A stretch of DNA of 64,000 bases from Octopus bimaculoides. Lineage: Eukaryota. Positions 47,683-47,940 of the stretch are shown here, one piece after another. The stretch spans positions 9,189,960 to 9,253,959 of the forward strand of contig NC_068989.1 of NCBI RefSeq assembly GCF_001194135.2, given 5' to 3'. A program made the position numbers and the translations under genes. The notes under the pieces were generated by a model. That model had not been told where the DNA came from and did no database searches. It saw only the letters and a list, made by a program, of their open reading frames with translations. Position 1 is the stretch's first letter. The number at the start of each line of letters is the position of its first letter.

Positions 47683-47825
47683 TACATTATTTACATTCGA
47701 TAGATATTTGTCCTCATTTTGTTTGTTGTTAACACAACGTTTCGGCTGATATACCCTCCAGCCTTCATCAGGTGTCTTGGGGAAATTTCGAACCTGGGTT
47801 CTCATTCCTAAGGTAGTTTTCGATG

Positions 47826-47862
<37 letters not shown>

Positions 47863-47940
47863 TATTATTATTCAGGTCACTGCTTGGAATTGAACTCGGA
47901 ATTTTGGGGTTAGTAGCCCGCACTCTTAACCACTACACCA
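47683..47940 (-). mobile_element. SINE family D, left arm of inverted pair 3
   Basis: Near-complete copy on the minus strand carrying the intact hammerhead. Confidence 0.9.
47731..47776 (-). ncRNA. Minimal type-I hammerhead ribozyme (intact) inside SINE family D
   Basis: Minus strand reads GACAC-CUGAUGA-A-GGCUG-gagggtatat-CAGCC-GAAA-CG-UU-GUGUU. Stem I GACAC/GUGUU, core CUGAUGA and GAAA, stem II GGCUG/CAGCC, palindromic ACGU stem III (dimer type), cleavage triplet GUU. Confidence 0.8.

Follow-up and report, generated by a model that had tools for sequence, protein, structure and literature searches.

A short Octopus retroposon family with RNA polymerase III boxes and a minimal hammerhead motif of the Penelope type

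Introduction

Minimal type I hammerhead ribozymes (min-HHRs) of Penelope-like elements (PLEs) number in the thousands per metazoan genome. Cervera & de la Pena 2014 (PMC4209133) reported for them several traits that their search had not imposed, namely an extra base after A9, a G10.1-C11.1 pair, a palindromic 15.2-16.2 segment without loop 3, a helix I of 4-5 bp and a long helix II, and found such motifs paired on opposite strands, 100-700 bp apart. Here, we describe repeat family D in a 64-kb stretch of the Octopus bimaculoides genome (NC_068989.1, positions 9,189,960 to 9,253,959; hereafter the window). One of its copies carries a motif of this kind, in a ~260-bp unit with the internal boxes of RNA polymerase III (Pol III) and not, as in metazoan PLEs, in the terminal repeat of an element that codes for a reverse transcriptase (RT) with a GIY-YIG domain. 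We think it somewhat probable that family D is a composite non-autonomous retroposon that uses Penelope machinery, made up of a Pol III head, an (AAT)n microsatellite and a PLE-like 3' module.

Other described systems share part of this organization. Schistosoma Sm-alpha (Ferbeyre et al. 1998, as reviewed in PMC6765202) is also a short repeat, presumed to be transcribed by Pol III, with a type I hammerhead, but its ribozyme is canonical, cleaves efficiently and often stands in tandem, whereas the octopus motif is minimal and loop-less and the copies in the window are solo or inverted. The animal non-long-terminal-repeat retrozymes, which have 170-400 nt (Cervera & de la Pena 2020, PMC7229834; Li, Clavereau & Pollet 2026, preprint, 10.64898/2026.07.22.740005), are likewise non-autonomous, carry a type I hammerhead and have been argued to come from the terminal regions of PLEs and to rely on their enzymes. 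They form head-to-tail tandems that give circular RNAs, and no Pol III head has been reported for them. In the window, by contrast, family D occurs as inverted pairs and one solo copy and never as a direct tandem, and one cleavage would not be enough to release its unit. Finally, the Okada-type partnership between long and short interspersed elements (LINEs and SINEs) also joins a Pol III head of tRNA type to an autonomous element's 3' end, and its copies are 5'-truncated as in family D. It differs in that the partner which we infer here is a PLE with a GIY-YIG domain, and not a LINE with an apurinic (APE) or restriction-like (RLE) endonuclease, and in that the products are inverted pairs with a one-sided extension.

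Results and discussion

The hammerhead motif of arm C1

Using blastn and MAFFT, we found seven arms of family D, of 185-290 bp each, at four loci in the window (Table 1), as had been counted in an earlier note made from the letters of this stretch. The copies are short, dispersed and truncated to a variable extent at the 5' end. Arm C1, whose sense reading runs from 47941 down to 47683 on the minus strand, is the least diverged (2.1% from the family consensus) and the only one with a complete minimal hammerhead, confirming the intact motif pointed out in the earlier note.

The catalytic boxes of C1, CTGATGA (47771-47765) and GAAA (47743-47740), follow each other in type I order and are also present in the family consensus. 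A single unpaired A lies between A9 and G10.1, and the G10.1-C11.1 pair is present. Helix I has 5 bp (one G-U) and helix II has 6 bp (one G-U), compared to 4 bp in the canonical ribozyme. There is no loop 3, since an ACGT palindrome is directly followed by T17, so that helix III needs two copies. All of the published defining features of the PLE class are found, from the type I order, the CUGAUGA/GAAA boxes and the extra base after A9 to the palindromic ACGU, the short helix I and the longer helix II, and by these sequence features the motif is a minimal hammerhead of the PLE type. The resemblance extends to its placement, near the 3' end on the sense strand, and to the occurrence of opposite-strand pairs a few hundred bp apart. 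The predicted cleavage site lies between 47736 and 47735.

We scanned the window with a min-HHR descriptor that combined the core boxes, an optional extra base, G10.1-C11.1, Watson-Crick pairing of 15.2-16.2, U16.1, H17 and a minimum of 4 bp in each of helices I and II. It matched one site, the minus-strand motif of C1, and 300 dinucleotide shuffles gave no match. A relaxed descriptor returned the same single site (shuffle mean 0.01). Chance is thus excluded at the level of the window, given one match against 0/300. The Rfam hammerhead models, which the earlier note had also proposed as a check, did not match the window motif at the gathering threshold or even at E<=10. Genuine PLE min-HHRs from metagenome contigs were likewise missed, and the silence of these models therefore carries no weight for membership in the min-HHR class.

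The other six of the seven arms are mutated in the core or stems, and the majority consensus of all seven is an intact hammerhead motif. CpG transitions account for some of the changes: A1 and A2 read CCAAAA instead of CCGAAA, and B1 and C2 read ATGT instead of ACGT. The remaining losses are CTGATGA to CTGGAGA in C2 and small deletions in A2, C2 and D, with part of stem III/I missing in D and A2. Arm B2 stops inside loop 2 at 8981, where a microsatellite and then an assembly gap follow. By its letters, a single arm of the window could be active. Nearly all genomic copies of family D are now dead relics, 2-15% diverged. A protein search with the translated SINE open reading frame (ORF) gave two matches, a UniRef entry of O. 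bimaculoides (P0001), to which the translated family D copy is 84% identical, and a Logan contig (L001) with a decayed copy that reads CTAATGA. No exact 25-mer match was obtained in the metagenome, viral or prokaryote collections.

Table 1 Features of repeat family D in the window. Positions are those of the 64-kb stretch; C1 boxes and hammerhead are given in the sense of the element.
Feature	Position	Strand	Description
Direct repeat AATTTTCCA, left copy	5568-5576	plus	9 bp, candidate target-site duplication
Arm A1	5577-5812	minus	5' end ~35 nt short; carries 33-nt 3' extension (5577-5609)
A1 motif	5658-5703		mutated: G12 to A, stem II mismatch
Arm A2	5813-6053	plus	inverted partner of A1; without 3' extension
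A2 motif	5961-6003		G12 to A plus 3-nt deletion
Direct repeat AATTTTCCA, right copy	6054-6062	plus	9 bp, directly after A2 tail; the repeat brackets pair A
Arm B1	~8572-8794	minus	5' end complete; internal deletion within head
B1 motif	8629-8674		2 differences from C1: ACGT to ATGT, GTGTT to TTGTT
Arm B2	8797-8981	plus	best-preserved head, box A TGGCGTAGTGG
Arm C1	47683-47941	minus	near full-length SINE copy; 5' end ~7 nt short
C1 tRNA-like head	47873-47941	minus	read from sequence
C1 box A	47940-47930	minus	TGGTGTAGTGG
C1 box B	47897-47886	minus	GAGTTCAATTCC
C1 internal (AAT)n microsatellite	47829-47872	minus	between head and 3' module (TRF)
C1 minimal hammerhead	47731-47776	minus	GACAC-CTGATGA-A-GGCTGG-AGGGTATA-TCAGCC-GAA-ACGT-T-GTGTT; stem I GACAC/GTGTT, core CTGATGA, extra A, stem II GGCTGG/TCAGCC, GAA, palindromic ACGT (15.1-16.1), U17
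C1 3' region past cleavage site	47683-47730	minus	33 nt A-rich, then tail
C1 tail	47697-47683		AATGTAAATAATGTA, (TGTAAATAA)n-type; ends at 47683
Arm C2	47942-48194	plus	inverted partner of C1; full 5' end starting GGGCATATGG; 10.3% from consensus
C2 motif	48095-48139		mutated: CTGGAGA, ATGT, one stem I base lost
Solo copy D	~56322-56609	minus	head 5'-truncated
Copy D motif	56407-56443		damaged stem III/I
Copy D tail	56344-56367
Copy D extension	56322-56343		reaches (TA)n

The same ribozyme in PLEs from metagenomes

We derived a search pattern with 22 fixed bases, CTGATGAAGGCTG-N6-14-CAGCCGAAA, from the octopus core and stem II. It matched 66 metagenome contigs, compared to fewer than about one that we estimate by chance, and no viral contig. 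About two dozen of the contigs, representing 14 distinct sequences, are in the exact octopus register. Their helix I is varied yet complementary (TCCC/GGGA, GCCG/CGGC, AACC/GGTT, TTCAA/TTGAA) and their stem III is ACGU or AUAU. Stems I and III appear to covary across these relatives. In an alignment of the 14 sequences with the octopus motif, all 14 having been fished with the octopus-derived pattern, 87.6% of the cells are paired against 71% after shuffling, and 40 cells show double-sided changes against 17.6, a number reached in 0/500 shuffles. Pairing falls to 15-41% in slid registers, and positions 15.2-16.2 are CG in 10, UA in 4 and UG in 1 of the sequences.

Some of these contigs belong to real PLEs. 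The ORF of one of them (L008) contains RVT_1 and GIY-YIG domains, and the ORFs of L022 and L038 are homologous to it (E 4e-48 and 7e-45, respectively). In L038, L022 and L012, the ribozyme follows the stop codon at a distance of ~106 nt, on the strand of the ORF, and it lies 87 nt before the end of the alignment of this PLE family, which we took as the 3' end of the element. The octopus repeat has the same layout on a smaller scale, with the ribozyme 52 nt after the microsatellite (a spacer of ~52 nt in C1) and 57 nt before the 3' end. No tRNA gene or A and B boxes were found within 500 nt upstream of the ribozyme at any of the 66 metagenome loci; within this sample, only the octopus element has a Pol III head.

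The pattern also retrieved other arrangements. In L007, L013, L017, L024, L033, L034, L041, L047, L062 and alike, a helix I of up to 7 bp directly follows GAAACGU or GAAACAU, a register which, unlike the octopus type, leaves no nucleotide for position 17. L014 and L043 (50-52% G+C) match with hammerheads that have a full stem III hairpin, ACC-GAAA-GGU-C, and a helix I CTCCA/TGGAG; both look bacterial by G+C and ORF density. Several PLE loci (L020, L048, L024, L037, L046, L059) contain 2-3 hammerheads on opposite strands, 300-1200 bp apart, in divergent as well as convergent orientation, which echoes published inverted PLE arrangements.

Head-to-head pairs and insertion signatures

Three of the four loci are head-to-head inverted pairs with the tails pointing outward, a feature that the earlier note did not report. 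In each pair, one arm is complete at the 5' end and its partner is 0, ~7 or ~35 nt short. The family 5' end is GGGCATATGG, of which A2 has a deleted form, GGCATAGTGG. Since the two arms of a pair diverge by ~10% and have (AAT)n tracts of unequal length, a length that the alignment shows to be different in every arm, the pairs are not assembly artefacts. An arm resembles its own partner no more closely than it does the arms of other loci.

Pair A is bracketed by the direct repeat of Table 1, and at pair C only a 7-mer without weight was found as a target duplication. The 33-nt 3' extension is one-sided, being present on A1 and not on A2. It is found again behind the tail of copy D and of P0001, an independent O. 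bimaculoides copy in which it is translated as HNSSSLK. Alternatively, the extension could be read-through from a master copy; it does not derive from another part of the family D element. Copy D adjoins (TA)n. These observations can be set beside the hallmarks by which PLE integration is told from LINE integration (Craig et al. 2021, PMC8557442), which include an inverted 5'-truncated copy adjoining the 5' end, a tail of 30-40 bp at one end only, variable target-site duplications, and microsatellite targets including (TA)n. The inverted truncated partner, the one-sided extension and the (TA)n neighbour are all seen in family D. The second tRNA-like SINE family of the window is never arranged head to head: its copies are directly repeated in tandem at 43328-43770 and converge at 7835-8024. 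Because the PLE hallmarks match and the second SINE family lacks such pairs, mobilization by a PLE enzyme is the reading that we favour. The suggestion in the earlier note that this machinery moves the element therefore gains evidence from the pairs, the extension and the (TA)n site, but the PLE partner in octopus was not found.

The second SINE family is more numerous than family D and has a head of the form ...GGCAGAATCGTTAGCAC...GAGTTCAAATTC... Its loci are 43328-43770, 7835-8024, 33702-34110, 3464-3605, 51098-51290, 62208-62385, 57735-57872 and 47444-47603. A further inverted insertion structure beside a TAA-type microsatellite is the 438-bp palindrome at 34079-34516 (82% complementary). 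The middle (~34190-34390) consists of an inverted repeat of unrelated sequence; on either side of it stand (ATT)n/(AAT)n tracts together with the 3' part of another SINE family.

The Pol III-type head

The consensus forms of the two internal Pol III promoter elements are TRGCNNAGTGG for box A and GGTTCGANNCC for box B. The box A of B2, TGGCGTAGTGG, fits the former fully, and the box B AGTTCGATTCC fits the latter at 10/11 positions, with a spacer of 31 nt between the boxes. The head pattern occurs three times in the window and not at all in shuffles. No T4 run is found inside the element on the sense strand except in the mutated B1, compared to 2-5 on the antisense strand, and the hammerhead has the same sense as the A and B boxes. 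Box layout, sense and absence of T4 would be what a Pol III-transcribed SINE needs. Of the box sequences quoted in the earlier note, TGGCGTAGTGG exists in B2 and GAGTTCGATTC in A1 and B1, but C1 carries neither. The head seems to resemble tRNA-Arg.

The abutting heads of pair C also give sub-threshold matches to the Rfam mir-885 model on both strands at 47916-47973 (33 and 28.5 bits, gathering threshold 66). A mir-885 gene was rejected here, since the hairpin comes from two abutting SINE heads.

Proposed mobilization and the role of the ribozyme

In the mechanism that we propose, a degenerate tRNA-like head, its Pol III A and B boxes still preserved, would be joined, through the (AAT)n microsatellite, to a ~160-nt 3' module laid out like a PLE 3' end, with the min-HHR ~57 nt before the terminus. 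Pol III would transcribe the whole unit from the internal promoter, the transcripts being predicted to start at GGGCATATGG. A PLE RT/GIY-YIG protein would then recognize the 3' module in trans, nick the target and copy the RNA by target-primed reverse transcription. Integration in the PLE style would leave an inverted, often 5'-truncated second copy head to head with the first, together with a one-sided extension of ~33 nt, variable target duplications and a preference for microsatellites. What the sequences show directly is the anatomy of the arms, the match to the PLE min-HHR class, the occurrence of this ribozyme in real PLEs and the architecture of pairs and extension; Pol III transcription, mobilization by PLEs and any cleavage are inferred.

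The hammerhead would have arrived as part of the PLE 3' end, in line with the idea of the earlier note that family D may have captured a Penelope-like terminal repeat, and it may act as a recognition element or be a passenger. As stem III is loop-less, cleavage after GUU would take place only in a dimer of two RNAs and would probably be weak. Indeed, PLE min-HHRs cleave poorly in vitro even as dimers (PMC4209133). In the energy model, the domain-swapped dimer is feasible at -22.3 kcal/mol, with other folds more stable. Cleavage is predicted to give 5'-OH ends at GUGUUAAC and a 2',3'-cyclic phosphate after GUU, and would cut the last ~57 nt from the promoter-bearing part. Copying the unit in full would not require it and would be opposed by it. 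As both sides of the cleavage site are retained in every copy, the RNA that served as template for transposition was uncleaved. Overall, the interpretation given in the earlier note holds for the PLE-type ribozyme and the Pol III boxes; "self-cleaving" is an assumption, and neither a cloverleaf nor covariation within the family was found.

Several observations weigh against a Penelope-dependent origin of family D. Compensatory changes among the octopus copies amount to 0 pairs, no better than in shuffles, and no double-sided change was seen in stems I and II; this within-family comparison, put forward in the earlier note, is uninformative because the copies have decayed too far and still resemble each other too closely. 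Predicted folding is unremarkable, with z-scores of -0.66 and -1.03, and the lowest-energy monomer and dimer are predicted in a non-active fold (-29.2 kcal/mol for the optimal dimer, against -22.3 for the domain-swapped hammerhead). In the class alignment, the first three stem I pairs had served as a selection criterion, and the similarity to the metagenome PLEs is limited to the ~40-nt ribozyme. No PLE coding remnant was found in the window, including by tblastn with the ORFs of L008, L022 and L038. The 9-mer that brackets pair A has by our estimate a ~2-5% probability of occurring by chance. C1 differs from the consensus at 3 positions (2.1%) and C2 at 15 (10.3%), a fivefold difference which suggests that C1 landed later next to C2, in two insertions rather than one; PLEs have been reported to insert beside older copies. 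As for the head, ARAGORN found no tRNA in it with default settings and called only C2 at a relaxed threshold (anticodon ACT), and the Rfam tRNA model gave no match in the heads even at E<=10. Given these negatives, "tRNA-derived" is a reasonable reading and not a result: the A and B boxes of the tRNA head claimed earlier are present, but its cloverleaf was not detected.

An ORF at 48604-48813 (minus strand), beside pair C, was considered as a PLE RT and rejected. It had no word-index match, no phmmer match among 1.8 billion representatives, and no tblastn match with a PLE consensus or with the PLE ORFs of L008, L022 and L038.

Alternative explanations

Family D might instead be an ordinary LINE-dependent tRNA-derived SINE, with its 3' module and tail taken from an octopus CR1, L2, RTE or Dong-R4 element. 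The hammerhead-like segment would then be an inert relic or a trapped old PLE fragment, and the inverted pairs would stem from insertion preference or from template switching in LINE-type reverse transcription. We consider this unlikely, even if it has several points in its favour. The tail is a short tandem repeat, (TGTAAATAA)n, and such tails are common in CR1/L2-type LINEs and SINEs and typical of stringent LINE/SINE partners, both of which speak against a Penelope partner. CR1, RTE and Dong-R4 elements are abundant and recently active in Octopus according to a repeat survey, the internal (TAA)n could reflect a Dong-type target, and no PLE sequence is present in the window. Nevertheless, both arms of the pairs have a complete outer 3' tail, whereas twin priming would give an internal break, and the second tRNA-like SINE family of the same window shows no head-to-head pairs. 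The one-sided 33-nt extension and the (TA)n site fit the descriptions of PLEs, and no LINE 3' end in the window matches the 3' module. A LINE-like fragment at 39324-39497, with which octopus contigs were sought, gave no match.

It is much less probable that the whole palindrome is the mobile unit, as a foldback or MITE-like (miniature inverted-repeat transposable element) DNA element with ~250-bp arms, mobilized by a transposase that duplicates 9 bp upon insertion, the solo copies being broken halves. Near-symmetric inverted pairs at three of the four loci and the 9-bp direct repeat around pair A would fit such an element, but the centres of the pairs differ, with truncations of 0, ~7 and ~35 nt and a 2-nt filler. 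The outer ends are inconstant too, as the tail repeat number varies and the extension is one-sided. Moreover, arms are no closer to their partner than to others, the divergence of the pair C arms from the consensus is unequal, and each arm has the anatomy of a SINE, with Pol III boxes, microsatellite and 5' truncation. Least credible of all, in our opinion, is that an AT-rich repeat came to resemble a hammerhead by coincidence, with no evolutionary tie to ribozymes. This would agree with one intact motif in seven arms and with the lack of family covariation, of an Rfam match and of an unusual folding energy. It does not account for the 0 descriptor matches in 300 shuffled windows, nor for the features beyond the core boxes, all of which are present, nor for the recurrence of the 22 specified bases in 66 contigs, including real PLEs, with covarying stems. 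The Rfam silence is uninformative, and part of the losses are CpG transitions from an intact consensus.

Significance of a possible PLE-dependent SINE

In the literature that we searched, no paper deals with hammerheads of cephalopods, and we found no report of a tRNA-type SINE with a PLE-type hammerhead or 3' end, Repbase and Dfam being outside the scope of this search. Family D itself may already be catalogued, even if most SINEs are unclassified in octopus repeat surveys. Retrozymes have already been argued to depend on PLEs. We tentatively raise the possibility, which we regard as still doubtful, that family D is the first recognized tRNA-type Pol III SINE that lives off PLEs instead of LINEs, that it is among the abundant octopus SINEs and that PLE-style integration seeds the genome with very many inverted repeats of ~250 bp. 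Seven of its arms were counted here in 57 kb.

By definition, SINEs are parasites of LINEs, and PLE-dependent non-autonomous elements have been argued for only recently and without a Pol III head. The concept of a SINE would become wider with one that has a tRNA-type head and a PLE 3' end. If this is true, read-through of the ~250-bp inverted repeats would give ready-made double-stranded RNA. Family D would also be a short, abundant reporter of PLE integration, with its inverted copies, one-sided tails and microsatellite targets, and a natural system in which to ask if the hammerhead of PLEs is a processing signal, an RT recognition element or a passenger. Such a SINE would also bear on the driver of the large SINE expansion in octopus genomes. 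Should a LINE prove to be the partner, all that is left is a further min-HHR relic in a genome.

The tRNA-derived SINEs OK, OR1 and OR2 of octopus were reportedly described by Ohshima & Okada in 1994. One of OR1 and OR2 is a CORE-SINE, and two papers name different ones. By eye, we saw no CORE-like segment in family D, judged against what we take to be the CORE sequence.

Other features of the window

The window has ~35% G+C, is rich in microsatellites and contains 27 N runs; no convincing coding ORF was found in it. A third repeat family of ~300 bp is present in at least six copies at 72-92% identity (18406-18744, 37757-38081, 49614-49793, 56894-57187, 59900-60138 and 2437-2649). The open frame at 3894-4238 (plus strand), with two sub-cut-off Pfam matches to C2H2-type zinc fingers (zf-C2HE, 25.1 bits, and zf-met, 21.1 bits), may be an exon or a transposon remnant. 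Finally, a 17-bp unit, TGGAAAGCCGTACTTTG, is repeated 8.1 times at 54399-54535 with 97% identity.

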